The notes beneath the pieces were generated by a model that was not told where the DNA came from, made no database searches, and worked only from the letters and a program-made list of their open reading frames with translations. Source: Monocercomonoides exilis PA203 (taxonomy: Eukaryota > Protista > Preaxostyla). From it: a stretch of 64,000 bases of DNA. The DNA lies in the NCBI GenBank assembly GCA_001643675.2, contig LSRY02000007.1:1302001-1366000 (forward strand), given 5' to 3'. Shown piece after piece: positions 199-44,743 of the stretch (the stretch's first letter is position 1; each line of letters begins with the position of its first letter). The translations under genes were made by a program, and so were the position numbers.

Positions 199-357
199 GA
201 AAAAAGATTTTTCTATTTTGCATCACATCATTTTTATCAATTCAAAAACCGTTTTCATTAAATGCCAAAAAGTTTTTAAATAATTAACCATAATTAATAT
301 TATATTTCTAATTGAAGCTGCTCTATTGTCCATTTGTATTTTATACATAAAATAATC

Positions 358-3300
358 ATGGATAGTTTTGTGCGCAAAATTATCAACTATGTTTATTTTA
401 ATGGATATTGGGTAAGCAACAAAGAAAAAATCAAAAGAATAAGAGATTTTTTAAATGCAAACTATCCTTCTGTTTTCATACCATTTTTGAAGCAGTCCCG
501 TTCGCTTCCATCATCAAGCACAAAACCTTATAATAATCAAGTTGTTAATCAACTTGTTATTTTGAATAGGCATTTCCCAGCGAAACCTACAGTTCGTTCA
601 TCTATTATTTTAATGTTTTTCCCGACAAAAGCACGGCAACTTTTCAACGTCATTTCTGCAACTCTTCAAGAATACATATTTCGTCTCGACTTTCCATCAA
701 GCGAATTGTTTTTTAAAAAGCAAGCAAGAATTGAGTTTTCAAAATTTTCCTTTTTTTTGAATGTATGCCTAATAAACAATCAATTATTTCATCATTTCCA
801 CTCAAAACGACTATCAGAGGTGCTTTTAATGTACTATCACAGCAAAAAACCTCAGCAACAAGGATGCTCAATAATATCATCGACAAAACAAATAAATGAT
901 TGGAATAAAGAATTGGATGATATTTCTTCAATAACAACATTTTTCACTCAAAAATTAGTGCGACCACTTTCTCCATTTATATCATTTTTCAGATGCAATC
1001 CAAATGTTTTGTTTGGCCAAGAATTGTATTTTAAAATTGGACCAGCATTACATATGTTTCTCTTGAGCGTTGACGATGGCCAAGGGATTGGCATCAATAA
1101 CTCAATAGGATGGTGGGTTGTTCGACTTTATTTGCTACGTCAACTTCTCGAAGAAGAAAAAACAATGAAACTCGAAAACGTTCACTCCAATGATCAACCG
1201 ACTCCAATAAGTTTTCAAAAATCCACCAAGCCTCAGTTATTTGTATCTTCTTTATCAACATACTCATCTTTGCCCGTTCTTCCTCGCTTGAATTCTGGCT
1301 ATGATGCATCGTCATCTTCTGCTTCTGAGACTTTGCATCATCAGAAAGCAGTATCAAAGTTCGAAGAGGCCAAAGAAATGATGCAATTCTATGAAGCACT
1401 TACGTCAACACAACTGTTTGATATCAGAACACTTTTGCTTGACAAAGAGCGATTAGAACAATTCATGCTCCGATTTATCGAAAAGGGGTTTTCCTCTTTT
1501 CACCTCACCAGAGCGCTTGCAGAATTTGTGATCTTTTCGTGTGGCTACGTATTGACCTTCAGGCACAATGTAGACATTGGGAAAAGAGACACGAATTTCA
1601 ACGGAACGGTCTCTGAGCGCCGTTTCAGCCACTTCCGCAATCCGAGCCAGGGCGAAGGCGAAGGCGCGGGCAGTGTGTTCTGCAACGACCGGTACAGCCA
1701 GCCGTCTCAGCGGGCGCGGCTGATGCTGCAGATCAACCAGCCGTTCCCCGACATCACAGCAGCCGATGCTGAAAACATGCGCAAAGAGGCGTTTCGGAGG
1801 CTGTCCTCCAGCAGCTCGTACCGGTCGCTTCTCTTTGAGCAGTACAGGCAGAAGGAGAGCGAATACATCTGCGCAGGCGATCTGATGTCTGTCTCGCCCC
1901 TCGATGCAATCCTCGAAATAGACAGCGCCCTGTCATTTTTGGACGGTGTTATGGATTTCCTGAAGGAGAACAGCAGGAAAGAGGAGTTTTCTGCGTTCTA
2001 CTCTCTTTCTTCCTCACCCTTGTTCCGCGCTTCTGCCTCTTCCACCACTGTCCCTTCTCCATCCACATCCACCTCGCCCACCACCAGCCCTTTGAGCAAC
2101 CGCATCACTGCTGCCTCTTCTCTCTCCTATTCTTCACAGACTCCTTACATCTCCACACAACCCACTTCTTCTGCCCCGTCTTTCTCGTCTCCGCATCACT
2201 TCACTTTTTCTGGCCTTCTTTCATCGCCTTCTTCAGCCTGCTCTCCCTCAAGCTCATCAGAAATATTCGCAGACGAAGAATCGTCTGTACTTAGTGAAAA
2301 TGTAACTTCCGATCACACAGAACATACAGAACATATTGAAATCACAGAAATCACCGAACACACAACAGATCACATGACAGAGCATATGACAGAGCACTTT
2401 GTAGAACAAGGTGACAGGACGCTTTCCTCGCCCACATCGTCTCATTCCGTCCGCTCGGCGCGCTCTTTGACTTCATCCCAGTCACAATCCCAATCACAGT
2501 CTCAGTCACAATCACCTCCTTTCCGCTCTTCTTCCCAGGCCCATTCGCATTCACTGTCCCGCTCGAACTCTCAGGCCACTTCCCTCACCATCACCCACTC
2601 CCCCTCACAGAACGTGAAGTTGAAGCATCTTTTCCACTCGTTTTCTCATTCTTCGCTTCCTTCTGCGAAGGAGAACAGCATCCGGGATGCAAGTGACAAG
2701 GTGTTTGAAATGGAAGATTCTCCGTTGTCTCCTCAGCAACAGTTGCAATATCAACAACAAAACCAACAAAATCAGCAAAACATACAAAATACACAAAACC
2801 CTCAAATTTCACAGCTTTCACAAATTCCTCTAAGCAGTCAACAGCATCAACAGAATCATCAACAAAATCTTCAACAGCATCATCAGCCACACACTCAGCC
2901 ACAACAAGGCACTCTTTCCTCTCATCACCTAAAGGACTCCAAACTAACTGACTGCACATCTCCACTAGCTGTCAATATTCACAAGCGGTTTCGTTCAAAA
3001 AGTGCGAAAGTGCTGCCACCTGCGATGTCTTCTTCAACTTTGTCTCTTTCGTCGCCAAGCAACATGTTTTATCTTTCTTCTATTTCTGGCTCTTCCCCTT
3101 CTTCTTTCCACAACCAGGGGTCAGACAATTACTTCTCTTCTTACCCTTCTTTTTCCTCCAATTTTTATCCTTATTCGAATTCCCCTTATTCTCCTTCTGT
3201 TTTTGCCACTCCTCCATCCTCCTCCTCCTCATCTTCCTCCTCCTCCTCTTCCTCTTCTTCTTCCTCTTCCTCTCACCCTCTCTCCCTCTCCCGCCTGGAG

Positions 3301-6000
3301 AAGCAACGGAGCCGCAGCGCCAAGCGCGAAGAGGTCTTTTCTGCCTGCCTCACCCGCCAGACGCTGCTCCCGCTCTATTTGGAGGTGCCTGCCCGCATCC
3401 AGCACCGCCTCACTGCCATCCGCTCTCTGTTCGCTGCCCTCAGCTCCTTCAGCCCTGTCCGCATACACAAAGCAGACAACGTGCGCGATTTTGCGCTGCC
3501 TTATTTATCACTTTTGACACGATTGTTAAATTTCCTGAAGCTGATTGTGTGTTTTGACGATGCTGCGTTTCTGAAGCATGTGACGGCGCTGACACAGCAG
3601 ATAGACTATTTGGACCAGAGGTTGATTGAGACTTACCAGGCAGTGCTGAATTTAAGCAAGCAGAATGAGCATAATGAGCAGAACTCTCAGCGGAATTTGG
3701 TTTCTCCTTTGATGTCATCTTCATCATCTTCATCTTCATCATCTTCTTCTCCTTTCCATCTTCCTTCTCAAAGCACCTCCGCCTCCATCATGGCCAATGG
3801 AAATATCAGTGTGACCTCACTAGCTGAGTCCCAATCCTCCGAAAGCGAAGCAATGATGATGATGAACAGCGCTTTTTCTCTCTCTAACAACACAGACAAT
3901 GCAATCGCAGCCACTTTCTCGTCCACTCCCAGTCTGCAGACGCCTGCTGAGGCATCGCCGAGGAATATGAATGGGAATATGAACATGAATATGATACAAG
4001 CGAACGACCCTTCATCATCTTCTCTGACAATCACCACAACGGCTTCGACTGCTACTGTTGCTACAAATACAAGTCCAACTCCTATGCCATCCTCTTCTTC
4101 CTCTTCTTCCTCCTCTTCTTCCTCCTCTTCCTCCTCTTCTTCTGGAGCTTCGACATCAGCTGACTCTGTTGCCTCTACAACTGGATCGATGACGCTATCC
4201 ACAGACAACATTGCGCCACATCTGTCAACCACAAGCTCTTCTTCACCGGCTCCTGAAGGGACTCCAACATATCAGCTGAATTCTGTTGCACTTGCTTCAT
4301 CATCATCATCATCATCATCATCATCGTCTTCTTCTATTTTTCCATCACCTCCTCTACTTTTGCCTTCATCAACAGTAATAACGACAACAACAACCTCTTC
4401 CTCCTCTTCCTCCTCTTCCTCCTCTTCCTCCTCTTCCTCCTCTTCCTCCTCTTCCTCCTCTTCCTCCTCTTCCTCCTCTTCCTCCTCTTCCTCCTCTTCC
4501 TCCTCTTCCTCATCTTCAACCGAACTTCTCGAGCCTCTCAATCTCAATCTCGATCTCGAGAACAACAAGGTTATCTTCCATTCTCCTTCATTTGCTGCCT
4601 GGATCGACTCCACACCCGCACAGTTCCGCGCGAAATGCATCGCTCTTTCTTCTGTTTGGGTGAATTTGGTCAAATCAGCACCGCTTGGACGGCCAATCAT
4701 CAGGAATTACTTCATCGAGACGGCTAAGCGGATCGCCAGTGAGTGGAGAAAGGACATTGAGCAAGTGAACAAGGATTCGCTGGTAGAGACAATAAAGGGG
4801 ATACAAATGTATCGTCCAACAGATGTCTGTGGTGTTTTGCCTGAGGCTCCGTTTCAGCAGTTTTCGGAGCTGATTGGGAGGATTGGGAATGTTTCTTCTT
4901 CTTCTTCTTCTTCTTCTTCTTCTGCTTCTTCTTCCTCTTCTGCTTCTTCTTCCTCTTCTGCTTCTTCTTCCTCTTCTTCATTTGCAATAGCACAAGAAGA
5001 AAGTGATGTTGAGGCTGGAAAATCACAAAAGAGCCAACTGGGCTTATTTAGCAGCAGACAAAGAGGAGAAGGTGATGCAACTGGCAGTTACGAGTTATCT
5101 CCTCAATTTCCACAGAACATATCTGCAATATCTTCTTCTTCTTCATTGACTTCTTCATCATCATCGTCATCTTCTGTTATCATTGAGCCTTCTTCACCCC
5201 CAGCTGCTTCATGCACATTTCACAGCAATGATTTCAGCACCAGAAGGTCTCCTTCTCCTCCTCTTGTCCAACGGAATAAACATGATTCTTCTCAGAAAGC
5301 TGCTTCATCCTCATCATCGACAGAACCCAATTCTTCTGCTTCTTCATCGTCTTCTTCTTCCTCCTCTTTCACCTCCTCTTCCTCCGCCTCTACCTTCATC
5401 CCATCTCTCCCCATCACCCCTGCCTACACCATCGTCAATGATTACTCCACTTTCCTCCCTTCCGTCCACCAAACAGAACAAGAATTTGGCGAATACAACC
5501 GCTCGCCCCGTTTCATCGACGAAAATCAGCAGTCTTCTGTTCCATTGACACCCATGACGGTTCATTCTCAGTCAACAAGCACAATCAAAGGATCAACAGC
5601 TTCTTCTTCTTCTGCTTCTTCTTCTGCATCTGCTGCATCAATAACGAACCAGTCTCAATCGTCTTCTTCAGATTCGCTGGATCATTCGCGCTCTGTGTTT
5701 TCTATTGCACTTAGCAGCAATGGTGGAGTTGGAGGAGGCATCGGAGAAAGCGGAGAAAGAAGAGAAAGAGAAGGAAGCAATGGAAGAGGCGCAGGAACCG
5801 GAATCGGGGCCTTTCCCCAGTCATCTCTTGGAGACGGATCAGAAATGGTTCCCTATCAACATATTGCCGATGTGATGAAGGGATATGCAGTGCCATCAAC
5901 ACACCAGCAGCAGCCGATGACTTCGCAGTCAGGGTATTTGGTACCATCAAGTGGGTATTTGTCAGGTGGAATGCATCCAAGAAGTATGCTTCGTATTTAA
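358..6000 (+). CDS. Exon 1 (N-terminal tail, first part of DHC_N1) of a giant dynein heavy chain-like gene, with long Ser/Gln-rich insertions
   Basis: Long ORF (the track starts at TTG 334; first ATG is at 358). Blocks resembling DHC_N1 occur in the expected order: WWVVRLYLLRQL (about 1111), FEEAKEMMQFYEAL (about 1360), LAEFVIFSCGYVL (about 1516), RIQHRLTAIRSLF (about 3394), FDDAAF..IDYLDQRL (about 3553) and RPIIRNYFIETAKRIASEWRKDIEQV (4690-4767; compare cytoplasmic dynein [23 protein letters not shown]). If spliced, the exon ends at about 5983 or 5992. Confidence 0.7.
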   Translation: MDSFVRKIINYVYFNGYWVSNKEKIKRIRDFLNANYPSVFIPFLKQSRSLPSSSTKPYNNQVVNQLVILNRHFPAKPTVRSSIILMFFPTKARQLFNVISATLQEYIFRLDFPSSELFFKKQARIEFSKFSFFLNVCLINNQLFHHFHSKRLSEVLLMYYHSKKPQQQGCSIISSTKQINDWNKELDDISSITTFFTQKLVRPLSPFISFFRCNPNVLFGQELYFKIGPALHMFLLSVDDGQGIGINNSIGWWVVRLYLLRQLLEEEKTMKLENVHSNDQPTPISFQKSTKPQLFVSSLSTYSSLPVLPRLNSGYDASSSSASETLHHQKAVSKFEEAKEMMQFYEALTSTQLFDIRTLLLDKERLEQFMLRFIEKGFSSFHLTRALAEFVIFSCGYVLTFRHNVDIGKRDTNFNGTVSERRFSHFRNPSQGEGEGAGSVFCNDRYSQPSQRARLMLQINQPFPDITAADAENMRKEAFRRLSSSSSYRSLLFEQYRQKESEYICAGDLMSVSPLDAILEIDSALSFLDGVMDFLKENSRKEEFSAFYSLSSSPLFRASASSTTVPSPSTSTSPTTSPLSNRITAASSLSYSSQTPYISTQPTSSAPSFSSPHHFTFSGLLSSPSSACSPSSSSEIFADEESSVLSENVTSDHTEHTEHIEITEITEHTTDHMTEHMTEHFVEQGDRTLSSPTSSHSVRSARSLTSSQSQSQSQSQSQSPPFRSSSQAHSHSLSRSNSQATSLTITHSPSQNVKLKHLFHSFSHSSLPSAKENSIRDASDKVFEMEDSPLSPQQQLQYQQQNQQNQQNIQNTQNPQISQLSQIPLSSQQHQQNHQQNLQQHHQPHTQPQQGTLSSHHLKDSKLTDCTSPLAVNIHKRFRSKSAKVLPPAMSSSTLSLSSPSNMFYLSSISGSSPSSFHNQGSDNYFSSYPSFSSNFYPYSNSPYSPSVFATPPSSSSSSSSSSSSSSSSSSSHPLSLSRLEKQRSRSAKREEVFSACLTRQTLLPLYLEVPARIQHRLTAIRSLFAALSSFSPVRIHKADNVRDFALPYLSLLTRLLNFLKLIVCFDDAAFLKHVTALTQQIDYLDQRLIETYQAVLNLSKQNEHNEQNSQRNLVSPLMSSSSSSSSSSSSPFHLPSQSTSASIMANGNISVTSLAESQSSESEAMMMMNSAFSLSNNTDNAIAATFSSTPSLQTPAEASPRNMNGNMNMNMIQANDPSSSSLTITTTASTATVATNTSPTPMPSSSSSSSSSSSSSSSSSSGASTSADSVASTTGSMTLSTDNIAPHLSTTSSSSPAPEGTPTYQLNSVALASSSSSSSSSSSSSIFPSPPLLLPSSTVITTTTTSSSSSSSSSSSSSSSSSSSSSSSSSSSSSSSSSSSSSSSSSTELLEPLNLNLDLENNKVIFHSPSFAAWIDSTPAQFRAKCIALSSVWVNLVKSAPLGRPIIRNYFIETAKRIASEWRKDIEQVNKDSLVETIKGIQMYRPTDVCGVLPEAPFQQFSELIGRIGNVSSSSSSSSSSASSSSSASSSSSASSSSSSFAIAQEESDVEAGKSQKSQLGLFSSRQRGEGDATGSYELSPQFPQNISAISSSSSLTSSSSSSSSVIIEPSSPPAASCTFHSNDFSTRRSPSPPLVQRNKHDSSQKAASSSSSTEPNSSASSSSSSSSSFTSSSSASTFIPSLPITPAYTIVNDYSTFLPSVHQTEQEFGEYNRSPRFIDENQQSSVPLTPMTVHSQSTSTIKGSTASSSSASSSASAASITNQSQSSSSDSLDHSRSVFSIALSSNGGVGGGIGESGERREREGSNGRGAGTGIGAFPQSSLGDGSEMVPYQHIADVMKGYAVPSTHQQQPMTSQSGYLVPSSGYLSGGMHPRSMLRI
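4396..4509 (+). repeat. Coding tandem repeat (TCTTCCTCC)x~12.7 encoding poly-Ser
   Basis: A perfect 9-nt unit read directly from the sequence; it lies within a run of about 41 Ser. Confidence 0.95.
4921..4974 (+). repeat. Coding 18-nt tandem repeat (TCTGCTTCTTCTTCCTCT)x3, encoding SASSSS
   Basis: Read directly; preceded by a (TCT)n microsatellite. Confidence 0.85.
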
Positions 6001-6296
6001 TTAAATTTATATTTTTTAATTTTTTTTGTTTTTTTTTCTATCTCTTTTTTATAAATAACATATTGCATTCATATCTTATTTATTTATTTATTTGTTTATT
6101 TTGAATATTGATTCTATTTTTTCTGTTTTTTTTTACTTTTATTTGCATTCTCACTCCTTTTTTTATAATGAAAAATTTGGTACTCTTTCACAATATGCTT
6201 CAAATACCTATTTTACTCACTTCCCCTTCCCAACACAAGATTTCATGGCTTCCAGTCAGATATACTCCACCCAGATGCTTCTATCTCCTCTTTTAG
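5993..6296 (+). other. Predicted phase-1 spliceosomal intron joining the two dynein-like ORFs (alternative donor 5984, alternative acceptor 6239)
   Basis: Donors GTATTT (5993) and GTATGC (5984) are both phase 1 in the upstream frame. Acceptors ...CTCCTCTTTTAG (ends 6296) and ...TACTCAC-TTCCCCTTCCCAACACAAG (ends 6239) are both phase 1 in the downstream frame. The intervening DNA is T/AT-rich, and domain motifs continue across the gap. Confidence 0.6.
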
Positions 6297-9200
6297 ATCC
6301 AAATGCAGCCAGTTCATCAAGCGTGCCTCCAACATCCCCAGTTTCTGTTCCTTATCACCCTCGCCATCATCATCATCAGCCCTTTCCTTCACAATACACC
6401 GACTCTTCTGCTTCAACTTCATCATCATCATCTTCCTCCTCTTCCTCTTCCCTCCCAATCAACACCAACGAATCCACCACCGGCTCTTCTTTGCTTTCCC
6501 CTTCCAACCTCTCTTCTGTCTACATCCCACCCACACTCGAAGTCTGCGAGCTTTTCACATATCGCTTCGTGCCCAACTTAATCAGCTACCGCCTCTCCTC
6601 TCGCCAGTCCCGCTATTCTCTCTCAAACCCATCGCTCTTTATTCGCACTGCTCATAACCTCCTTTTCTACTCTAATTCTGACCAGAGTGTTCCTGTGAAG
6701 CAGTTCCACTTCAAAATGGACGATGATCATTACCTGAACAACAGCGACAGTGCTATTATGTCGCAGTCAATGCAGATTCCGTTGGTCCCTTCTTCTTCAT
6801 CGTCGTCTGTGCTTCCACTCGCCAGCGCACCCGGGAGCAGCAACAGTCTCACATATGCCTCCACTCTGCATTCCTTCAGCCTCCCTCCCACAAACACAGA
6901 GGGAAATCAGCCAGACACACTGCAGCGCTCCCGGTCTTCTCAGCTTTTGGCAACAGTCAACCAATCACTGACGGATCTGAGGTATTTTTATAACTACGTC
7001 GTTGCAGGTATCATGCACTATGAAAGCTCCATCACAAAACATTGGGCTCAGCAGTTTCTATTTGCTTTGGCGGATCTTATATCAACTCCATTACTTAGGT
7101 TTATTGATCACTACAGTAAAAACAATGCAGATAATGCTCAAGGTTCATCTTCATCATCCTCTTCCTCTTCTTCCTCTTCCTCTGTTTATTCCCCCACTGA
7201 GTTCGATTCTTCGCTGCAGGCCTCCCAGTTCACAGAGTTCCACGGCCCGCGCTTTGTGATCGTGTCACCCGGCAACTTCTCCACCACTGTTGCCCACACT
7301 TCCATCGCACAGGCGCTTTCGCTTTCAACCGTCCTTGTCAACATCAGCGTGCAGCAGAACGCATTTCTCGCGGAGTTTCTGAAGCTCATCAAGTTCGGAT
7401 TCGTTAAACCAAGAGATTTTCCAGTTGCTGGCTTCCCCAAAATATCGCATCTGCACTTGTTTGCGAACACCACTTTGATTGTGGTGCAGAAGCTGACGCA
7501 GATTGTGTTCTTTCGTGGACTAATCTACCGTTCAATGCACCCAAACATCATCGCTTTGCTTGTACCCCACGTCAACTTCATTGAAACAAAACTGAAAGAA
7601 CTGGGTTCTGGCTTCAACTGGAGTCGCTTACCATCGAACTCGTATCTCGCACGCTTCATGAAGCTTCTGTCGTTCTTTGCGAATCTTGTACAGCGGATGA
7701 ACGCCTTTGCGCGCTTTGCTGACCAGCACTACCTGCAGGTCAGCCGCATCCGCTTCTTCTGCTTCAAAGAAGGGCTGCCGATGAAGCTTGATGATGTGCA
7801 CGAGTTTCAGCTACGGCATGTGAGGCATGCGAAAGAGCAGATCCAGTTCTGCTCCAAACAGATACGGACGATCATGGCGATTCTGTTTGACGAGGCAGCG
7901 TTGGGTTATTTAGCGTTGACGTCAGAGAATCCTCGCACTCGCTCTTTGTTTGGCTCTACAGGCGCGCTGCATCTGCACACGTTCCAGCTGATGGGCATTG
8001 AGCTGTGCAGTCTGATTTCGCTGAACGAGATGAATGCGAATGCGGGGATAGGGGCATTTGACGACGACATCATCAGCTGCGATGAGAATGACGATATTCC
8101 GCAGGATCCGCTGAATGTGCAGAAGGAACAGTCAAATTCTGAGGAAAAGCAGACGCTTCATTCAGTTTTGAACAACAATGAGAACAATTCTGGGTCAAAG
8201 TTGTCTCACTTTGGAATAAACAAGCCGAATGCTGCTTCTAATTCCGCACAATCGCCAACTTCTGTTTCACCGCTAATCACCTTCCCGTCACTGACATCGT
8301 CAACTTCATTGTCCAACAACCCAAATTCGCTGCACTCAAACGATGCTGCCCACACATTTGTCTTTTGGGGCGATCCAATTGTGTTATTTGAACTGCAAAA
8401 CGCCTTTTTGCATCTGCTTGGCAGAGCACAGAGCATCTACATAGCTTCGCTCCATCATGCGTTGCTGGCTTCAATCAAACAGTTTTCTTCTTTTCTCTCA
8501 AACGCAGAGACTTATTCTATCGCACTGATCAACCAGGCATACGAACAGCAGGCATCAGATGGTAGTGAAGGCGCTTTCAATGATGAAGAGAACCCAGCCA
8601 CATCTGCAAGTTCTGCTGCATTTATTCCAAACAATGAATCATCTCAAGCTCTACCCATCTACAGCAACATCTCCCACCAGCTGCACTTCGACCTGATCTT
8701 CCACGACGGAGTGTTCAAGCTGAACCCGTCTATCAGCCAGCTCAGAGAAAGCGTGCACAAACTGCTTCTGGAGACGTTTGCGGCTGTGAGGGAGATCAAT
8801 GCGTGGGCAGAGGAGGATGTGAAGTCGTGCTGGGTGCTCCCGACACGCCAGATGTGTATCAATGAAGCTTATAGATTCAAATCTTTGACTGGAACAACAC
8901 CCTTTGCGGTCGTGAAGACGATGTCGATGCATCTGTCATCGTCGGGCCAGGCTCCAAAGACTGTTCCTTTCAGAATGAGAGACATTAAGAAATTGAGAGA
9001 GAAGCAAAAACACAATCCACGCACTTCTGTGAAGAATTTGCTGAGTGAACATTTGCCGAGGAACTCAAAACTGGGCAACGATGCTGAAGAGGACAGTAAT
9101 ATTCCAAGAACACCAACTTCAGTTGCACTATCGTTTTCATCTTCGTTGAGTTCTTTGGCGAATGTGGAAGTTACCACTCCTTCTGCATGCTCATCGACTC

Positions 9201-12026
9201 CACACAATTACATCCATTCTCTTCGGTCTTCGAAGAAAGTGCCATCTGTTTGGGTGTTTCTGTCTGATTCTCAGCCGCTAATTGCACAGACGTTCATCAC
9301 TGCTACGTATGTTTCAGAGCCAGACAATCTGACAGCGTGCATAACACACCGCTTGTCACTCATCGACTTCATATTCAACCAAAAACCAGAGTTTGTGTTC
9401 GATGCAATCATCCGCATTGTCGATGGGCTGGGGCTGAACTTGGATCTTCCGACGTTTGCTTTGCCTTCGCGGTACGTTCGCTTCGGGCACACAATGCTGT
9501 ACCCAAGCAGCGAATCTGTCTCATCGAGTGATGGCCAGTTGCTTTCACAGTGGACACTCCACTACACAAACAATTCGTCACGCAACACATTTCGAAATCT
9601 GAGGCTTGAATTGTCTCTGATGGATGATGTTGAGCTGAACGATGTTTCCAAAGACTTTAAAGATGAATTAACCAGCATACCTTCGTTGAATGTGAAGCAA
9701 ACAAAGTCATCCAAACCTAATCGGTATTTCGAGTCAACATCTCCGTTTCCATCTCTCTCTTGTGGGAATGCTATTGCCTTCACTCAAACAAACTCAAAGA
9801 GAAGCTCAAGAATGACTCTGCCTGAAAGGAAATCGACAATGCCTATTGCTCCAAAATCAAGCTTTTACGCAGTCACACTGGGAATCACGCTTCCCAGCAA
9901 GGATTGCGTGATGCCAGTGACGGTGCTGCCTGAAGATTCAATGGACGATCCTGAGCCATACAACTTGTGTGCGTTGTATCCTGTCATTCCACCAGATGAC
10001 ATTTCACCCACAAAGCTCTTTCAACCTGACCCTGAGCCTTATCGCTGCCCGATATGTGGGTCATATTTTGTGTCTGTTGTAACACTGTTCAATCACATAA
10101 ACGTAAATGGTCCGCACTATCAGCCTTCTCAGATCCAACGGTCTCTGTATGTGACACTGCTGAACTATGTCACGAGATCATTGGAGAGGCTAGCTGTGTG
10201 GGAGAGAGCGCTTGAACTGGTAGCAAAACACTCGGCAAAGTCTTATGAAAACCAAAGTAATGCTTTTATGTTTGATGTTCTCACATCAGCTTCTTCGCCT
10301 TTGTCCTCATCATCTGCTCAGATTGCTGGCTCTGCCTCACAAATGGCATCTTCCTCTTCAGCGGCTTATTATCGTTCACAGCCTTATTCATTTGCATATT
10401 CTGATGCACAAACATCTGATATTGTTCAGCAAGATCTGTCATCTGACAAACATTACGGGCGCTTTCTGTCTCGTGCTGTGATTGCGCCTCCACCTCCGCA
10501 GCTTGTTCAAATGCTTGCTGCTTCCTTTTCTCCATTCAAAGTGCACCATTCAATTGTTTTATCCTCATTGAACACAATTCTTCCATTTGCACTCTCACAA
10601 ATAGGCAAATGGATTGATACCCTGTGCACTATCTTGGATCAGATCTCTCATGCATACCTATTCCCACCAATGGATTTGCTGACAAGAGTGAAAGAAGGGC
10701 TGACATCTCAGCTGAAGAGCATTTCTCGAATGCCTCAAAAATCGTCTGGAACAGTGACAGAGTCCACAACGCCATTCACATCTTTGATTCAGAGGGTGTC
10801 TCAACGGAAAGGAGTATCTTTTTCTTTGGCTCTCTCAACTTACCGCACGTTATCTCTGACTGCAAAGACGGGAATTGATCTCTCTGCATTCACCACATCC
10901 TACCTGCAGCAGACGAAAATGTCAACATCCATGAGCGCCAATGCACTTTTATCATCAATCGACTCTGTTGATGAGCTGACAAGGCTATCTGACACATTCT
11001 CAAACTACTGCGATGCCCCTGCTGAATTGGATGTGAGTCTGAATGAAGTTAGTGAAGCTGTGTCTGTGCTCCGCACATTCAGTCCGAATCGAGCACAAGG
11101 ATTGCTTCGGCTGTTATTATCGCTGGTTGACCAAGTAGTGTCATTTGACCAGCTCTCTGCAGACTACTTCAGCTCAGCCGACACGAAGAAGAAGCAGCTT
11201 GCACTGCGTGCGAGGATTGCGAAGGAAAGAGTGTCGATGAGTTCTTCGATTCTTGTTGCACATTCCAAGGCGATGAGGAAGTCGTATGTGCAAAGTGTGG
11301 ACTCTTCACTTCTCTCTTTGGAGATGAAGGCAGAGAACGTGGCGTTGGTTATGTCGCATTTCAAAGAAGTGACTGCATGCATAGCTGATCTCAACCACGA
11401 TGAGCTGCTTTTGAAGCTGCCTCTGTCAGAATTCCCAGCAGTGGAGAAAGAAATGCAGAAGATGAACTATAACTCGCTTTTGTACTCGACATTCTTCAAC
11501 TTCCGCAACTGGAAGACGAAGCTGATGAGCCAGCCGTTTACTAACGAGAACACAACAGCTGCGCTTCAAAGATTGGACTATTTCACACACAAACTGAAGG
11601 ATATTGAGACTATTCGTATTTCAGTGCCATCGAAGAAGATAATGAAAATGAACAAGTTCCAGAAGCTTCTGATATCTGAGATCGACAATCTGAAGGAGCC
11701 ACTGCATCATGTGGCAAAGATCTCACAGAAATCATTCAGAAAGCGCCATTGGGAAAAATTGGCTGAAATCACACAGAACAGAGCAATACTGACAGACATG
11801 GTTGAACTGCAGAACATAAGCCAGATTCAGGACGAGGTGAGGAAGAAGTCGAATTTCCTTGTGATGATGCAGAAGGAGCAAAGATTAAGAAGGAAAGAAG
11901 TATCAGCTTATAACCAAGGAGCTGTTTTGAGTTCAGCATCATCTGCATCTACTGGGGCACAGTCTGCTGTTTCGAATCCGATTTCTTTGGCTACAAATGC
12001 TTTCTTCCATAATTCAATTTCCACTC

Positions 12027-12081
<55 letters not shown>

Positions 12082-27000: not shown

Positions 27001-30000
27001 CCAGCCGACTTCAACAAACGCTCACAGCAATGTGTCTCTGGTGAGAACACGCCCGTCAAAGGCAAGGCAGCTTTCAGAGTCTTCCAAGCATGCCATGCAT
27101 ATGCATCAACTGCGCAGCACAAGCACCCTCAGCAAAATCTATTCATGTCTTGTGAGCATCTTCCTCTGCGTAAGAGAACTGAATCAATCATATTCTCGTT
27201 CAGATATGTCACGTGCCTGGTTCATCTTTCGTGTAGTGAGGATAAGCACTCACATGCACGTGCGTTTTGTGCATAAGTTCTCAGACTTGTATTCAAGTCG
27301 CGTCGAGTCGCTCAAGAAACAGAAGGCGCTGGCAACTGCTGTGGTCAAAAAACTGTCTTTGATAAATGTGACGCTTATGTCTCGCAGGGCATTTGTTTCA
27401 GCAATGGTTGGAGTGTTTTATAAACATGACATTTTGAGAAGGAAGATACAGCCTCTTGTGGAAGATGTGAAATTAAGGCTAGCAAAGATATGCATTTTGA
27501 TGAGGACAGTAAAGCAGCTGACGGAGCAATTGCACGAATTGACTGTTCTATCTGAGAAAGAGCGAAAGGAGTCTGAGGATTTATATTCGAGAGCTCTTCT
27601 TTTGCGGCAGCAGAATGCCGAACGTGAAGAACTGTGCAGGCACAAAAAGATTGTCTCAGCGAATGACCTGCTTTGGGCGAAGCGGCTGATGAACCCTCCT
27701 CGCCTTATCAGGTTGGTATTTGATATGATTTTGATTGTGATGAAGAAAAAAGTGAATCCAGTTGAACTGAGGCCATATCAAGTGAGGAGATGCTTGTCAC
27801 CACAAGTGCAGACATTTGATGAGAAATTTAAAAAGCCATCTCCGCTTTCTCTTTCAGCAACAGTCAACGGAATTCCAACTGTGAAAGAGAAGTCGCCAGT
27901 GAACTTGTCACGAATGCTGTCTCCTTCAGCATCTTCTTCATCTCCACGCCATCAGACAACTTTGTCCTCTTCACTTCGAGGGAGCACTCTGAGCTCAGCT
28001 GCTCAAAAGAAAATTGTCTCATCACCTCGAACTCAAAGCCCATTGACTCAGAAGAATCTGTCAAAAACGATCGGAGATCCGTTGCAGTTGTCTCTAAGCA
28101 ATACACCTGCATCAAGAAATACATTTGCATCCACTAAATTAAGAACACAGCTTTCCTCTGACACTCAATTAGCATTGTCTTCTTCAAAGGCCATTAGCAG
28201 AAATCAGACTTCGTTGGGTCTTGTTGATTCTTTCGAAAATGCGAGGGCTGTTCTTTCGCTGCCAACACTTGCGACCGACGTGAAAGTTCTGTCAGGAAAT
28301 TACATTACAGACGAAGAGATTGAGCTTTTAATGCCTTATTTTGAGATGCCGGTCATCAACCGAAAGGACATCAACTTGAACTGTGAGAAGCTTTTGCCTG
28401 TTTTTGACTCAATCGCATCGTTCAAGTGGCTCAAAGATCATCCACAGGAAGAGATACCACCAACGGAATCATTCTGCTTCAGGAAGTCTAAGTTGAAGGA
28501 GATAATCTCCCAACTCGAAGAAAACATGACCGAGATCGAAAACGAGCGCGTGTTTATGACTGACTCGGTGAACAAGCTCATTGTGCTCCTCAACATGAAT
28601 GTCACAACACCAACTGAAGTCGAATGTGCAGTGAGCGACTCTTCATCTGATCACATTAGCACCGAAAGATCAGACAACTCATCTATTTCCTCATTTAGCG
28701 CTTCCACATCATCAGGTTCTGCCAATTTAGCTGCTCCTCTTTCAGCAAACACTTCTTCGTATACAAACGATTCATCTTCATACGAACACCAAACATCAAG
28801 CTGTTTGGATGACATTGATGACGACCACGAAGCCTCCACTGGCTCATCGTTGTCAACCTGGCATTCATCTTCACCATCATCTTCTTCTTCGTTCATGCCT
28901 TCTTCTGCCTCTGCTGCTTCTTCGCCATCACAAGTTGCACCTTCTTCCGTCTCCTCTCTGTCAACATCGTTGTCTCAATCATCAGCCTCTTCCTCTTCAC
29001 AAAATATGGCCAATGCACTTCACACAACAAATCTCGATGCTTTCAATCAAAAATCAGTACATCAGCCAGCTCGTCGTGTCTCCGTTGCATTGTCGCAGTA
29101 TCATCAAGGAGGCTTTGCTTTTGAGTCGCTTGTGATGTGGCAGCTGGAACTTGCACGCATCGAGAGATGTGTCGAGTGTGCGCTTGGCGACTCAATTTTA
29201 GCGGCTGCTTTTGCTGTGTTTCATGCAGCCATCTCGCCTGATGAGTGGCACAGAGCAGTTCTTCTCTGGCGAAGGTTGCTGAATGTGGCGGGCATTTCAT
29301 ATTCTGTCGATCCCAGAGAGGATAAAACCGACCACGAAGATTATCCAGGCATTTATATAAAGTCTCAGCACGTTGCTAACAGCTCCAAAGATGATCCACT
29401 GGGCACAGATCATCTGAAAGAACACGGAAGGGCTGCATGCTCATCCGAGCAAGCACAAGGAAATGCCAATAATACTCAGAAATACGTGGCACCAGATGCA
29501 GGAGTGGAGAATCCAATTTACGAGAACGGATTGATCACTTACTGCAAAGAAGGCAGCTCCGAAGTCGGGCTGATGTACAACCCTGACCAGATCATGCGGC
29601 TTGCCCAGCCGATTTCTCCTTTGATGTTCCCGATATTCACCACACTTGGCGGTCTGCAAATCCTTCCGTCCAATTTGGCTTTCGGACTGTCACCAGACGA
29701 GCAGTCGCTGATGTGCTCAACAATATGGCACAACTGCGAGCCGTCTGTGCCAATCATCTTCTATGACCCATTCCACATCGCACAGATGCATGTGATGAGG
29801 AAAGAGCGCGAACGCACACCGATTATCGTCACTCATATTACTCATTCGCTATTCTTCTTACATGCCATCCGTGCTGCTGTATGCGGGTTCCCATTGATTG
29901 TCGAGTATGTGTCTGTTAGAAAAGAGATGAAGCCTGAAAGAACTTATGATATTATGCAGTTTTTGGATACGCTCGCAACATGCTCGTCGTTCTCGCCCGT

Positions 30001-33000
30001 CCAGTCAATGCTGTTTTGTGGACAGGAATTGAAAATTAAGCCAGGATTTCGATTGTATGTGTTTGTGAACGAGATATTTGCGTTGCTGCCTTATGACGAG
30101 CCATTCCTGGCGCTTTCATCTTCGCAAATGTACAAGTTGAGCATTATTATTAACTGGTCGCCTATTCTTCTTAACACACAGTTCCACTTCCAGATGCTTC
30201 ATGCAGTGGCAGCACCAATGATTATGCCTGATGTCTATGAGCATCAGCTTCAACAAGTATCAATTGTCAAGCGAAATATTGATGAAAGCGAGTTAATTAC
30301 AAAAGAATGGTTGGACTTTGTATTACAGTTGCGCTCTCAAGTGGCAAACCAGTTTTTCACAGTTGGAACAGAATTCTTCAATAAGATTCAATCTGATGAC
30401 GCTGCGGTCAAAGAAGCACTTCAGCAATACGAAGAAGACAAAGAAATAATGCTTTCTCTTTCACCTCTCATCTGCTTGATAAGAGACACTTTCTCTGTAA
30501 CTGTTGCATTCAACACACCGATCATCTTTTCAACTCTGCAAGTATCGTCTCAATACGATCAGATGAGTGTGCCTATCGACAACCATCACAGCCCATCAAT
30601 TGTGGAGTTCTTTTCTCTGATGATGCATTCGCTCAGATATGCTCTTCAGCTGATGGAGAAGCAGAAGATTGCGCAGACTGTTGCTGGAATCAGTGTGTCT
30701 TCATCGTTTGCGGATGGAAGTGGAATGAGCGATGAAAGTGAATGTGATGAAAGCGATGATAGCGCAAGTATATTGGCTGATGAGTGGAGCGATGAAGAGG
30801 AGTGGAAGATTGAAATAGACACAAAACTATCAGAAAAGAAAACGAGATCAAAGGAGATGTCATCTGCAAACACTGCTGAACTTCCACAGAATTCAGAGCA
30901 AGCAAATGAACAATGCATATGGAAGACTGATATCTTTGGAGTGCCTGAAGAGAATAATGAATATATATCATCTCCTCTGCAGCTCATTCATTATCGATTA
31001 AAGCCCTTCTCTTACATGATCTCGGTAGCTTCGCAGAATTTATTAAATATTCGTTCATCTTCTGCTCAAAACAACCAACGTTCACCAATCTCAGAACAGC
31101 AGCAAACAGGCAGTACAAATCAAGGCAAAACGTTGCAACCAACTGATAGCAGCAACTGTGAAAGAACAGTGTCTCCGAATATCTACACGAGACAGTCGCC
31201 GTTTTCTGGGCGAAAGCATACACCTCCGTTGTCAAGGACTGGGTCATTCTCGCCATCTGTGATATCAAACAGCTCTCAGAGTGGATCAAAGTATTTTGTG
31301 TCTCCGCATCAAATAGAAGCTATTATGGAGACTGTTGCAAGCGTCTTTCTCGATCGGATAATTCATTCTTTAGATTTTTCTCCAGATGATGAGCTGTGTA
31401 ATTCTCCAGATCAGAACGGACGTGTTGTGTTTTTGTTTTTGCTATCGATGTGTCTTAATCAGAGAGCTCAGCTAATGCAGCTGGAGCAGAAGGGATTGCT
31501 GCAACAAGTCGGAATCTTTTCTGTTCCACAAACTCAGCAAGCAAATAAGCAAGTTCATTCAGATGCTGCAAATCAATCAGAAACACAAAAATTGTATGAA
31601 AGTAAAGTGAGATGGTTTGATGTGCCGTCTTGGATCGATGTTATTCGCAAGCCCAACTTGGACACAATGTATGACAGGAAACTTGGACTGATTATATCCT
31701 CACTTCATCACGATTACAAGTTATGTGTGGATGTTCTTCTGAACTGTTATGATTCTTCTTCTGTTGCAGCCAGCGATTCATCTCCACTTTCATTTGCATT
31801 GTCAAAGTCATCAACTTCTGCTATTGATGCGCCTGCAAACGTTGAATTCAGTTCAGAATTGAATTTTGGCAAAATGAGCTCATATGGGAAGAGTCGTACA
31901 AGCAACTTCCCTCCTCCTCAACTTTCTCTCGCAAAGCCGCAATTGTCGGCTCCTCCATCCAGAAAATCGCTTTCTCCTTCGCTTTCTTCAAAGCCATTGA
32001 GTCAGCGACGTTCGCTTGGATCTTTGTCTCCTCTTCCTCCAACTTCACCAAATATAACTTCACAAGCCCCACCATCCCCTGCTTCACTGGGGAATGTGTC
32101 TTTGGTTCAATCAAAGCAACCAGCACAGAAGAATTCGTTGCAGGATTTGGTCTCTATCATAAATTCAATGCCAAATACGAATGCTCCTGTTGCATTGGTT
32201 GATGCTTCGTCTTCATCAAAAGTGAATGCAAGACAGCTAATGCCTTCGCTTACTTCGTCGGCTTCTTTGTCTTCGCTGGAGAATCCTCGTATTTCAAACA
32301 GAGAAAAGAATATTCAAGGATCTTCCACAGTTCAGGATAGTGAGCAAGATGTGTTCAGTCTTATTCCTCCAACACTTAGAGATTCTCTTAAGCGGTCGCT
32401 TATGTTGTTTTCTTTCATTGAAAAATACGATAGACAGAGAATTGTTGATGATTGGGGCTCCTTTACAGACTCGATAAACGCTCGCAACCTGACACCTGAC
32501 TGGCAGCTTCAATTGACACCAAGCAGTTTGCTTAGCAACACGACAAAGGCAACAAGCTGCGTGAAGCTGATCATGGACTCTTTGATGACACACACCGCTG
32601 AATGGATAAAATGGGGATCTTCTTCGTGTGTGGAGCTGCTGTCGCTTCCAGACAACTTGGATGCCAAGATCTCACCATTGACTCGACTAGTCATCCTCCA
32701 CAATTTGGCTCCACAGCGCACCGCATTTACGATTATGTACTATGCCTTGTCTACCCTGGGCATGTTCCTTCCGTCGTGCATGCCTGTCGAGCAGCAAGTC
32801 ATCAGGCAGGTTAAATCGTCTCCTCCAAACTTCCCCATCTGCCTCAATTCTCTTCGGGGTGTGTATCAGAGCGACATGTACCTTCGCAGCATCAAGCAGA
32901 CCCTTCGAGCAACAGAGAAAAGCGAATACCCTTCACTGTTGATTCATCATCTTGGTTATATTCCTTCGTATCTTCCATGCTTGATTGTGGAGAAATTTGC

Positions 33001-36000
33001 TCATTTGGGTATCAGCTTTTCAGTCATATTTAACGGGCAGGTGATAATCCCTGAGCAGAGCTTGCGTTCGGTGCCTCAGCAAATTACCACTAATGCTGAT
33101 GTTTCACTGGAGAATTATCTAGTTCAGCAGATATTTGACGATCGCCAGTCAAAATATTGGGGACTTGCTGTGATTCCGAAGTCCTTGGCATCATACTTTG
33201 CAGACGTTTTTGACTCAAACTACTATAAGCGCACTCACTCACTGTCATCTTTGTTTGCGTTTGCTCCTTTGAGATGTGGTCATGATTCTGGCCCACATAT
33301 TTCATCGACAAATGAGGTTTCGTCATTCAATCACCTGCCCAACGATCTATCTCATCCACATTCGCGTAATGCCTCCACATCTATCAGAAATGAGATTAAT
33401 CTTTCTGGTTCGATTCAGTCTCACTCATCTACTGAGCATTCAAACTCCAGTTCTTATCACTCAGATAACTATCCAGTGACGAATATGAACTTTTCTGGTA
33501 TAGATGAAGCTCTGCTGTATCAAGCACATTCACAACCAGCCTCTAAAATGGCTCATTCCGCTTTTTATATTCCTCAAAACATTGATCAGGACAGCGTCAA
33601 CAGATGGACAATCTTCGTGTATCAGACGAACGATTCAGTCACATCTCAGCAATTGCATGAATTGAACCCATCGTCTCAAATGGATGGGTCAACTTCTCCA
33701 ATGATTAGTTACATGCTCAACTCTTCTTTGATATCTCACAGGGGAAATGACTATCTAATTGGCTCTTCCAATTCTCCAGCTGCTGCTTCAATTGGCAGTT
33801 CTTCGGTGGGCTCAACAGTACCTTATTACAGAGTGACATCTCTTGCTGATGAGCAGAACCAGCTGATTCGATCGATGAACATGAGGAGTGCTTCTCCCTC
33901 TCCACCTCCTCCATCTCCTCCCAGTCATTCTCAAACATATATTCATAACCCTTCTGTTTCTCCAAATGCCAATCCTTCATTGTCAACAGGGATGGGGAAA
34001 TCATATGCAGCTGGGAGAGGAGCATCAGCAGGAGCATCAACTGCTGGATCGTTTCCTCTTCGCTCTCCTTCGCTCACCAAAATTGGTGCTGAGCAGCCGT
34101 TTGCGGATGCTCGGCCTTCACTTACAAGACAGTCATCGAGGCAGGCAGAGTATGCTTCTCAAAATGCTCCTCAAAAATCCCTGATGTGTGATGCCTTTTA
34201 TCCAATCTTGCCGAACAACCCACCGTCACTTACTCATTTTCTGATTGAATGTGATTGGTTGAAGCGTTATAATCATTCAAACTCTATTTTATCCACGTTT
34301 TTGAATGTGAAAAGCAGTGACATCGAATTTAACCCGTTTTCGTTCCTGTCTCGTGTTGTCTCTTGGATTCCAGCTGAGCTTGAAATTGTGGACAGCTCGT
34401 TTGTACACTGGAGCGCATTGCTCTTCAGTCTTTGCTATTCCTTTGCAATCCTCCACCTCCGCTCCCGTTTTCTGGTGCTTTTCAACTCAACAAAAATGGG
34501 TCCATTTCCAAGACGAAACAGCAACACAAACACGACTGTTCCATGGAGCATATCTCCAAATGTCTATTCGCAGTCCACATTCATTTCATTGCTCCGATGT
34601 GTTGCTGGCTCAATTAACTTCCTCATATATTACTATCGAGAAAATCACAACCAGCAAAAGCAGCACAGTCGCTCAGACTCAGGGAGAATTCGAATCAATG
34701 AAAATAATGAGACTGAGGCATCACGATTTACACTTGATAACGTTGAGCTTATGACAAGAGAGTTATCCAAACTGCGAACAGATTTACTGTTCACGCTAAC
34801 TCCGCTGATTTCATTTAACGAAAGAGAGATGCTGTTTGTCTACAGAGTGCTTTGCATTTATATCACGCCAGCCATATTTCTACCATCATTTGATTATTGC
34901 CATCCTCCGCTCCCAGACTCTTTGTCTATTTTCTTGGGGGATTCAACTAACTGTGTCTTGAACCACATAACATCTATGAAATCCACAACGTTCTTCTTCC
35001 CAAAGCATCTTCGTGGAATAAGATTCGACAGAGAAAAGATTATAAGTTATGTGTATCAATCTGGAGCCATTGAGCTTGACCCATCAATTCTTGGCCTATC
35101 GCCTTCGGTCATTGATACAGCCAGTTGTGAGCTGTCGCAAAGGATTCTGAGTGAAATGAGCCATCGTCTGAAACGAATTCAGGCGCCTCATCAGGAAAGG
35201 AAAGTGATCATCTTCCAGCAGTCGTCTGAAGAACGAGGCAGCCCCAGCTTGCCGGCTGAGTCTGTCCGCATTTCTGAATCAGAGCTGCTGGGTTTTCCAT
35301 CAATTTACTCGCAACAATTTGAGAGAAAAGAGTTGATTCAAAACTCGCTTGAAAAGGCTATTCGTATCTGTGAGGCATTGCCTGAGCCAATCTCGCTGTT
35401 TAAGAGATTCCATTTCTTCGAGAAAGTGTTCACAAAAGCGGAGCATCCTGTGATAGATATGGTGATTGCAGAGGAATTGGAGTATTTCGACGAATCGATT
35501 GAAGCAATAACAACTCATTTCACTGTGTATTCTCAGATTCTGTTGAAGGATCTTCGAAACGCTTCGGGCGCTTTCAATCAAGTAATTAGCTTGCTTCAGT
35601 CGTTTTCTCCCAACAGCGTTCCGTATTATCTGCACTCTATTCTTCCGATTCCTGCCCATGTCACCATGACTGTGTCTGATTTGACGTCGTGGTTGACGCT
35701 CCGCAGAGATTTCCTTCAGGATTGGGTCACAAACGAACAAAATCAAGTGGGCATCATCCCGCTTTCTCTCTTTATCTCTCCTGTCTCATTCATTTCTTCC
35801 TTTGCCACTGAAGGGCATCTTCTGACGAGGAAGCTTGCTCGTCACATGAGCTCATTGTTTTTTGAAGACGCTTTCATCGGACTCACCCTTGAGCCTGTTG
35901 ATCCACATACTTTTTCTGTTCCACGAAGACATTTTTCATTAATTGATGAAACAGGAGGTGTTTCTATTTTGGTGAGTGGCATATCAATGGCTGGCTTTGC

Positions 36001-37081
36001 GTGGGACTTTGTGAATAGAAAGATTATAAAATCAAACTGCGTTGGCTCTTTACCAAGCACCGCTACTCAGTTTCCCATTGTCAGATTGTCTGTTATTTAT
36101 CCGCGTTATATGGAGAACCACAAAGTCGTTCGTGCATTTGGACTTTCTTCTCCATCTGCGTTACAAACATCATCAAGCACAATAAGCAGGTCTGCTTCAT
36201 CCTCTGTTTCAGCTGCTTATTCACCTCTGCAGCAGCAAGTAGTTTCTTCCAATTTGACTTATTCAGTGCAAAATAATGCACGTGTTGCTTCATCTTCCTT
36301 GAATCCATCGTCATTTGTCAGTGAAGTACCTTCAACTTTTAAAGCCTCTTCGATACAGTACCCTGCTTCACAGTGCTTTATTGACGAGCCAAATATTCTT
36401 CCTATCACAACAAAGTACCCACCGTTTAATATACTCCACACGCGCTTTGTTCAGCTGCTCGCACACAATGGAGCCACTTATGCCAAATCGAAGTCAAAGA
36501 TTGTGCAGCAGCGCATGCACTCAAACTTACCTGAAAAGAATCGCTCTGCAGACAAGGCAAATGCGAGCAAGATGCAGACAAGTGGAACAAGTAGTTATGT
36601 ATTTACAAAGCCTTCTGCTTGCTCTGCATCGCAAAACTCGACAATATCGTCCTTTGACTGCTCACACATTAATCCCTATGCAGATGCACCGTTTGTTTCC
36701 TCTGACACTGCTCTTTCAGGAATAATTGTTCCATTTCAGTCACTTACAAAAAATGAATTATCTGATTATTCATCATCATCATCATCATCATCATCTTCTT
36801 CTTCTTCTTCTTCTACGTTGCCTGCTTCAGCATTATCATCTTCAAGAGGATATTCTCCTCTTCGTAATGTTCCGCATCGAGCACCTACGAAGAATTCTGA
36901 TAAAGAATGTCCTGCTCCGTTTCTTTATCAATCATCCATTTTCTCTTCATCAGCGAAAGACACTGCAGAGGTCACAGTTGTGGTGCTGCATGATGATTTT
37001 GCTAATTGGGAAAGATTGGGCTGCTATTTATTTTTTGATTTTGATAGAAACTCGTTGGAAACAAGTTGCATTCTCAAATAG
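6245..37081 (+). CDS. Dynein heavy chain-like protein, main exon (rest of tail, linker, AAA1-6, stalk/MTBD, C-terminal domain); highly diverged and expanded
   Basis: Stop-free ORF of more than 10,000 codons with dynein heavy chain motifs in canonical order. DHC_N1: VNISVQQNAFLAEFLKLIKFGF (7337), GFNWS (7610). DHC_N2: RKRHWEKL (11738), EAKIEEEVIRIEKMW, AQRMWLILRDLF..LKPEARLF, FPRLFLL (13040). AAA1: YAYLG (16403), GSGVWG, ELPDHFRKCFRPV..PD (17021). AAA2: GPCMSGKS (18557), WSDG. Stalk: NPPRLIRLVFDMILI (27692), LGDSILAAAF. AAA5: YDP, FRLYV. AAA6/C-terminus: LLFSLCYSFAILHLRSRF, GISMAGFAWD, WERLGCYLF (37007). Confidence 0.9.
10040..10117 (+). other. C2H2 zinc-finger-like motif in the dynein-like tail
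   Basis: YRCPICGSYFVSVVTLFNHINVNGPH matches Y-x-C-x2-C-x3-F-x5-L-x2-H. The second His lies at x6, slightly longer than the usual x3-5. Confidence 0.6.
12029..12153 (+). repeat. Compound microsatellite (TCGTCA)n/(TCA)n/(TCT)n encoding poly-Ser inside the DHC_N2 region
   Basis: Read directly from the sequence. Confidence 0.9.
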
Positions 37082-44423: not shown

Positions 44424-44688
44424 GAAATATTTTTCATAAAAAGATAATGAAGTTAAACAACTCTATGAAAAAGCTAAAAGTTTCAAAATTTTTAAAAGCA
44501 ATTTATGAAGATTCAATTGTTCCAAATGAGCATTTTAATTCTGTGAATTATTGTTTCAATTAATTCAGGTTTTATGTTTTATAATTTGAAAGTTCGAGCA
44601 GCTAATGAGAAAAATCAAAATTTGTTGAATGCAATTATGCTTTTATAAATAAGTCGGGATAAGATTGAAGAGAGAAGGCTATCAACAA

Positions 44689-44740: not shown

Positions 44741-44743
<3 letters not shown>

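Follow-up and report, generated by a model that had tools for sequence, protein, structure and literature searches.

A two-exon gene for a 12,155-residue dynein heavy chain-like protein without AAA1 ATPase motifs in the oxymonad Monocercomonoides exilis

The stretch of DNA analysed here (the window) comprises 64,000 nucleotides (nt) of the Monocercomonoides exilis PA203 genome (GenBank assembly GCA_001643675.2, contig LSRY02000007.1, positions 1,302,001 to 1,366,000, forward strand). At positions 358-37081 it contains a single transcribed and spliced gene of two exons, encoding a dynein heavy chain-like protein of 12,155 amino acid residues (aa). The protein follows the canonical domain order from the linker to the C-terminal domain and has lost the ATPase motifs of its first motor module, AAA1. 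We think that the gene probably encodes a hugely inflated, motor-dead oxymonad dynein heavy chain, which would serve as a passive scaffold part.

A single gene in two exons

Two giant open reading frames (ORFs) lie on the + strand, ORF1 at 334-6000 (first ATG at 358; 1,888 codons) and ORF2 at 6092-37081 (10,329 codons). An earlier reading of the letters on their own (the sequence-only reading) had placed both correctly and had joined them, across a T-rich gap with phase-matched GT and AG sites, into a single gene for a dynein heavy chain-like protein of about 12,150 aa. The gap at 6001-6091 and its flanks are indeed T-rich; GT is present at 5984 and 5993 and AG at 6238-6239 and 6295-6296, and all four candidate splice sites, as read from the sequence, are in phase 1, so that any pairing of them preserves the frame. 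Four RNA-seq runs from one study, labelled synthetic metagenome / metatranscriptome, contain 87% of the sampled words of 4800-7600, and contigs assembled from them match 650-6649 with zero mismatches. Contigs of all four runs join 5983 to 6240 in frame, with GT..AG borders and 163-255+ nt on each side of the joint, and the codon split across it is AAT; no contig of the four runs enters the intron, 5984-6239. The sequence-only reading had put the splice at 5993/6296. Its arithmetic for that pairing (12,139 aa) is right, but the sites used in RNA are those that it had offered as alternatives, the donor at 5984 and the acceptor at 6239. Its larger claim, that one gene spans both ORFs and that RNA would be found spliced across the gap, is borne out by these contigs and by the public gene call of 11,874 aa.

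Exon 1 (358-5983, + strand) is covered by RNA contigs from position 650 or earlier to 5983, with interruptions at Ser-codon repeats only. The spliceosomal intron that follows it is T-rich, 256 nt long and in phase 1 (GTATGC...CACAAG), and exon 2 (6240-37081, + strand) runs to the stop codon TAG at 37079-37081. The start is presumably ATG 358, the first ATG of the open frame; from there a coding sequence of 5,626 + 30,842 nt yields the 12,155 aa, with a mass of about 1.34 MDa. The two exons were joined for length, frame and mass only, and all the searches and folds reported below were run exon by exon. Chance cannot account for an open frame of this size. The first 700 nt of exon 1 are open too, although they are AT-rich (G+C content down to 0.22) and a stop would be expected in them about every 13 codons.

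Early in exon 1, an in-frame, AT-rich GTAAGC..AG segment (412-492/495; 81 or 84 nt) is a candidate second intron; it lies outside the stretch compared with RNA, and it alone turned up in a scan for more intron-like in-frame AT-rich GT..AG segments. Further RNA 'joints' within 3095-5375 have 21-34 nt on one side and fall inside Ser-codon repeats, and we took them as repeat artefacts. A near-perfect 9-nt tandem repeat at 4394-4517 (CCTCTTCCT, 13.8 copies) underlies one of the Ser runs of exon 1, and the RNA contigs are interrupted there and at similar repeats.

The public M. exilis gene call ends exactly at 37081, and its product has no Pfam match on record. Because 11,874 aa exceeds what ORF2 could encode alone (10,329 aa at most), the public model must include ORF1 sequence, and because it does, the M. 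exilis annotation leaves the gene unsplit. The sequence-only reading had warned that an annotation could split it; that is not so in M. exilis, where there is one call, but it is so for paralogues in Blattamonas. The public model is correctable, given that the intron at 5984-6239 has RNA support and that the call falls 281 aa under the full open frame. A downstream ATG was considered as the cause of this shortfall, and no ATG fits. The public 11,874-aa product was not among the matches in two large protein searches, although the product of the neighbouring Pecanex-like gene was.

Dynein architecture and the loss of ATPase motifs

Several kinds of search identify ORF2 as dynein heavy chain-like. 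Pfam finds DHC_N2 at an E-value (E) of 1.3e-35 (123 bits against a cut-off of 31.9) and a partial AAA_6 at E 2e-8; on 1,000-aa pieces it adds Dynein_AAA_lid at E 0.003-0.004 and Dynein_C at E 2e-5, the latter with 24.4 bits, just under the cut-off of 25.7. A sequence search of the PDB returned dynein heavy chains alone, with alignments over the linker, AAA1 and the AAA2 P-loop; axonemal chains of the outer-arm and DNAH1 types scored best, dynein-2 scored far lower, and cytoplasmic dynein-1 was not among the 60 chains listed. In a phmmer search ORF2 aa 5001-10000 had no match in the PDB; a phmmer comparison with one Giardia dynein covered the linker and AAA1 only, and a search for giant relatives of 5,500-17,500 aa found that Giardia dynein alone.

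A finer map came from profile-profile comparison by hhalign, in which 400-aa windows of an alignment of ORF2 with three Blattamonas proteins were set against an alignment of ten canonical dyneins, with the Pfam domains of one reference dynein (P0113) as the ruler. About 17 colinear matches run from the linker to the C-terminus, 10 of them at 88-99% probability. The linker (DHC_N2), broken by a poly-Ser insert, occupies 10943-13159 (ORF2 aa 1618-2356; here and below on the + strand) and is supported by Pfam, by the PDB matches and by hhalign at 96-99%. AAA1 follows at 16364-17479 (aa 3425-3796), where the partial AAA_6 match lies and where hhalign reaches 97.8% with the P-loop region left unaligned. 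The start of AAA2 at 18137-18700 (aa 4016-4203) carries the P-loop GPCMSGKS at 18557-18580, found by motif scan and in the PDB alignment, with hhalign at 97%. The AAA2 lid at 21155-21451 (aa 5022-5120) has the Dynein_AAA_lid match and hhalign at 57%, and an AAA3 remnant at 22562-22756 (aa 5491-5555) has a colinear hhalign match at 34%. A family-conserved block at 23372-24646 (aa 5761-6185), which scores 75-92 bits against the Blattamonas paralogues, stands at the place expected for the AAA3 lid and AAA4.

The stalk lies beyond this block, at 27230-28603, with CC1 at aa 7047-7221 and the microtubule-binding domain (MTBD) and CC2 at aa 7375-7486 (hhalign 92% and 88%). An AlphaFold2 model of the stalk has confident long helices and a helical MTBD (pLDDT 70-95 in the helical parts), and all the top Foldseek matches of that model are dynein stalk or MTBD structures, with E from 3e-4. 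AAA5, including the post-stalk GDxxLxAAF motif, is at 29138-30655 (aa 7683-8188; hhalign 93-97%). The start of AAA6 is at 32564-32863 (aa 8825-8924; independent E 1.6e-9 with a custom dynein hidden Markov model (HMM), hhalign 91%), and the AAA6 lid and dynein C-terminal domain are at 34346-36043 (aa 9419-9984; Pfam Dynein_C, hhalign 51-94%). AAA1, AAA2, AAA5 and AAA6 are thus mapped at 91-98%. The mapped blocks are spaced 150-1,500 aa apart, as against about 10-450 aa in a canonical dynein. Family-specific and low-complexity inserts separate almost all the modules, and relative to canonical axonemal chains most of the mapped blocks are parted by inserts of 150-1,000 aa. The sequence-only reading had claimed a complete dynein domain order, and from the linker to the C-terminal domain the order is the canonical one, but AAA4 is undetectable; of the HMM matches that it proposed to look for, DHC_N2, a partial AAA_6 and a weak Dynein_C were found exon by exon and DHC_N1 was not. 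Midasin/Rea1, the other giant protein with six AAA modules, was considered and does not fit: the stalk/MTBD, DHC_N2 and Dynein_C are present, and there was no MIDAS or VWA match.

The ATPase motifs have fared differently from the scaffold that carries them. Unrelated sequence stands at about 16658-16711, where AAA1 should carry its Walker A motif (GPAGTGKT in canonical dyneins), and at 16829-16855 Walker B has EN for DE. The AAA3 region is without a P-loop (no GKT in the family alignment), and there is no P-loop motif at the expected place of AAA4. By motif scan, the AAA2 sequence GPCMSGKS is the sole bona fide P-loop in 12,155 aa; one further match to the pattern, at ORF2 aa 8340, lies within low-complexity sequence. 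Hydrolysis at AAA1 is needed for dynein motility and drives every known dynein, while canonical AAA2 binds nucleotide without hydrolysing it. Since the AAA1 and AAA3 motifs are gone and only the normally non-hydrolytic AAA2 P-loop is left, the protein should be unable to run the dynein ATPase cycle, and very probably it cannot cycle as a motor. The sequence-only reading had made no mention of this catalytic loss.

In front of the linker lies a tail of about 3,400 aa, which begins in exon 1. There, a 540-aa, all-helical orphan N-terminal region is followed by about 1,300 aa that are mostly Ser-rich and of low complexity, with short helical islands; low-complexity sequence makes up 52% of ORF1, mainly as Ser runs, and 14% of ORF2. 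The sequence-only reading had described DHC_N1-like blocks in ORF1 and at the start of ORF2. The peptides that it quoted are all present (ORF1 aa 1445; ORF2 aa 317, 333, 416 and 489), but HMM and profile comparison found no DHC_N1 match in ORF1. Pfam at E<=10 found no DHC_N1 in ORF1 or in ORF2 aa 1-1750, and the DHC_N1 match is absent from every Blattamonas relative too. A word-index homologue search with ORF1 aa 1-540 gave no match, the best score of ORF1 in an ESM-atlas feature search was 0.77, which is noise, its islands did not match either of two dynein profiles in hhalign (E 0.16-0.99), and tblastn of ORF1 on two Blattamonas loci found no match. A single-sequence AlphaFold2 model of ORF1 is all-helical with pLDDT 35, too poor for a fold search.

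The assignment fared better in ORF2. In an hhalign comparison with a profile of 20 dynein tails, a tail block at 7532-7888 (ORF2 aa 481-599) matched the last part of DHC_N1 and the residues that follow it (72-76%, E 2.4e-5). It aligns to residues 754-872 of P0113, in which Pfam places DHC_N1 at 216-791, and it includes the G..(L/F)(T/N)W motif. One of the peptides quoted from the start of ORF2 falls inside this block, while the others lie only in a colinear non-significant match. Because the end of DHC_N1 sits at aa 481-599, most of the dynein tail is expected upstream of ORF2 aa 481, that is, in ORF1; by colinearity, the remaining tail would lie there. Closer to the linker, a family-specific tail block at 9215-10261 (aa 1042-1390) is conserved in 7/7 Blattamonas family models. 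It includes, at 10043-10120 and about 450-500 aa before the linker, a C2H2-like zinc finger that gives weak zf-C2H2 Pfam matches here and in the relatives and is likewise conserved in 7/7 models.

Relatives, possible role and neighbouring genes

In an exhaustive HMMER search with ORF2 aa 1801-3000, proteins of Blattamonas nauphoetae (about 30% identity) were the best of the long matches, and ordinary axonemal dyneins came next. Three of the Blattamonas models (KAK2952531.1, KAK2958275.1 and KAK2962130.1; 6,500-7,000 aa) share 12-13 colinear blocks with ORF2 between aa 1042 and aa 10319, at E 1e-127 to 1e-172, and conservation of the C-terminus extends up to ORF2 aa 10319. The sequence-only reading had proposed a search of related genomes for orthologues. 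Their public names derive from DHC_N2 only. The three long proteins have the same AAA1 lesions, with no Walker A and with EN or DN in Walker B, and the AAA2 P-loop GPxxSGK[ST] is retained in all family members. Because colinear Blattamonas paralogues share this state of AAA1 and AAA2, we recognise an oxymonad family of giant motor-dead dyneins; and because the lesion is common to two genera while the genes are open, transcribed and conserved in blocks, the loss of the AAA1 motifs is old and the proteins have been maintained. From ORF2 aa 1041 onward, about 6,260 of 9,289 residues align to at least two of the three Blattamonas paralogues, so much of the extra length is conserved in the family and is not merely simple repeats. 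This alignment, and the 36.5 kb kept open through the AT-rich stretch, agree with the earlier suggestion that the gene is probably under selection.

Two Blattamonas paralogues (assembly GCA_033064195.1, locus L002 at 9250-28202 and locus L001 at 10001-29264) are each split into 2-3 adjacent gene models. At locus L002 the similarity extends to before the annotated start, and there is a change of frame from model to model.

What such a protein might do is suggested by the parts that it has kept. The conserved stalk tip could bind microtubules, and the long, partly disordered tail could anchor the protein to a second structure, so that a static cross-linker, spacer or scaffold of megadalton scale would result. 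It might sit in the axoneme or in the oxymonad microtubular cytoskeleton (axostyle, preaxostyle and pelta). Microtubule binding at the stalk tip and a passive cross-linking or scaffold role are, on balance, what we would expect, by a narrow preference. Oxymonad axostyles bear dynein-like and non-dynein microtubule cross-bridges (PMC2108841, PMC2114570). It is an attractive if rather unlikely proposal that the giant dead dyneins of oxymonads are the cross-bridges of axostyle and preaxostyle microtubules, in which case former motors would have become fixed struts that define length, with the lattice spacing set by the inflated inserts and the 3,400-aa tail, and different types of bridge supplied by a multi-gene family.

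Several points weigh against our interpretation. On the side of the gene, all the RNA evidence consists of assembled contigs from a single study labelled 'synthetic metagenome'; such contigs are unable to reveal transcript ends, isoform ratios or rare unspliced forms, and they were compared over 650-6649, so that exon 2 may hold further introns and the 5' end may differ from the one given here. The public product is shorter than the full open frame, and ORF1 lacks a homologue in any search (Pfam, profile-profile, word-index, atlas or tblastn). On the side of the protein, AAA4 has non-significant colinear hhalign matches only, and the matches of AAA3 and the AAA2 lid are weak. The MTBD contains a 150-aa Ser-rich, disordered insert (27770-28222) that may affect binding, and the stalk model is biased towards the dynein fold because canonical dyneins were in its alignment. 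The scaffold role is pure inference.

The main alternative concerns the site at which the protein works. It could belong to the flagellar axoneme as a structural component of the DNHD1 kind, replacing or accompanying a dynein arm and stabilising the axoneme, and not to axostyle or cytoplasmic microtubule arrays. This is possible, though we do not favour it. Its nearest canonical relatives by sequence, among the 60 chains listed, are axonemal heavy chains, and Kollmar (2016) has argued for an axonemal nature of aberrant dyneins whose tails can be aligned (PMC5100056); yet multiple giant paralogues per genome, as in Blattamonas, exceed the obvious needs of an axonemal repeat, and beyond the end of DHC_N1 the tail has no recognisable class-specific docking region.

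That the protein is still driven by ATP, with turnover at AAA2 or at an unrecognised site, as an unconventional motor or an ATP-gated microtubule clamp, seems to us improbable. Family-wide conservation of the AAA2 P-loop would fit such an activity, as would retention of the linker and C-terminal domain, both of which belong to the mechanical cycle. Set against these are the nucleotide-binding, non-hydrolysing character of canonical AAA2, the absence of any other P-loop, and the loss from AAA1 of both Walker A and the catalytic Glu that motility requires.

It is more improbable still that there are two genes here, with ORF1 encoding a Ser-rich protein of its own, the dynein-like protein starting at ATG 6245 and the spliced RNA representing minor read-through. 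That ATG is in frame and lies 5 nt past the acceptor, ORF1 has neither dynein similarity nor a homologue in the Blattamonas paralogues, and isoform ratios are beyond the reach of contigs. Nevertheless, all four runs yielded the spliced contig alone, its joint preserves the frame and uses a GTATG donor close to consensus, most of a dynein tail would be expected upstream of the DHC_N1 end at ORF2 aa 481-599, and the public 11,874-aa model needs ORF1 sequence. Least probable of all is a functionless 'ghost' dynein drifting towards a pseudogene: catalytic motifs have been lost, both ORFs are bloated by low-complexity sequence, and aberrant dyneins were termed ghost genes by Gibbons (2012, as cited in PMC5100056), but no stop interrupts the 36.5 kb, the gene is transcribed and correctly spliced, and several Blattamonas paralogues share both its lesions and its conserved blocks, the MTBD and the AAA2 P-loop among them, as expected of an old loss in genes that were kept.

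A transcribed, spliced gene for an inflated dynein heavy chain without a working motor has wider implications. At 12,155 residues its product would rank among the largest proteins of unicellular eukaryotes and would be about 2.7 times as long as any characterised dynein. It indicates that the dynein scaffold can stay under selection long after the engine has been lost, and that it tolerates inserts between nearly all of its modules. It also amounts to an experiment of nature on what a dynein needs for non-motor roles; the parts kept here are the stalk tip, the AAA2 nucleotide pocket, the linker and the C-terminal domain. Finally, the family provides candidate genes for the oxymonad microtubule cross-bridges, which electron microscopists have studied since the 1970s with no molecules assigned to them.

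Other genes of the window lie downstream. A Pecanex_C-like gene at 38202-44423 (+ strand), whose open frame begins further upstream at 37716, has a public product of 2,073 aa (P0173, 100% identical) and a weak Pecanex_C match at E 3e-10. On the - strand at 48576-60617 is an open frame of 4,013 codons, for which the public call has a product of 3,449 aa; a Tyr/Ser-Thr kinase domain is present at its C-terminal end only, and the rest is without a Pfam match. Between these two convergent giant genes lie about 4 kb (44424-48575) with a G+C content of 0.28 and no ORF of at least 100 codons. A 638-codon ORF at 61203-63119 (+ strand) has no Pfam match. Rfam and tRNA scans found nothing.

Comparison with known dyneins

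The canonical axonemal heavy chains, such as the outer-arm alpha and DNAH1-type chains of about 4,200-4,700 aa, have the same order of linker, AAA+ modules, stalk/MTBD and C-terminal domain as the M. exilis protein. The latter differs in being 2.7 times longer, which is the ratio to normal heavy chains that the sequence-only reading had estimated; its AAA1 is dead, P-loops are missing at AAA3 and at the expected place of AAA4, and DHC_N1 is detectable at its end alone. Canonical dynein tails are 800-1,500 aa long (PMC5100056), as against about 3,400 aa here, and the C2H2-like finger of the tail is a feature of the oxymonad family and not of canonical dynein tails. The M. exilis genome paper reports a nearly complete axonemal dynein set and says nothing more on dyneins (PMC6759080), and our literature search turned up no account of oxymonad dyneins that are giant or dead at AAA1.

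Departures from the canonical plan have been described elsewhere. Kollmar (2016) distinguished 17 dynein classes and a number of orphans, among them aberrant classes with odd AAA5 regions, odd stalks or low-complexity extensions (PMC5100056). The aberrant classes (DNHD1/class 11 and classes 10 and 12-16) and the 'ghost' dyneins are divergent like the M. exilis protein, in that their motor modules are altered and they bear class-specific extensions and added low-complexity sequence (PMC5100056). Compared by description, they differ from it in that none has been described at this size and in the lineages that carry them, which are metazoa, chytrids and oomycetes. Class 12 is without a typical MTBD (PMC5100056), whereas the M. 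exilis protein retains one.

The closest system is in Blattamonas nauphoetae, where the three long proteins are accompanied by four shorter models, and 'putative Dynein heavy chain, N-terminal region 2' is the name they carry. Identity to the M. exilis protein is about 20-35%, the models reach 6,500-7,000 aa or come as 2-3 separate gene models, and they hold nothing like ORF1 or most of ORF2 aa 1-1040; as judged from sequence, they may be either paralogues or fast-evolving orthologues. What they share with the M. exilis protein are the colinear blocks, the AAA1 lesions, the AAA2 P-loop, the C2H2-like finger of the tail and the motifs of the MTBD.

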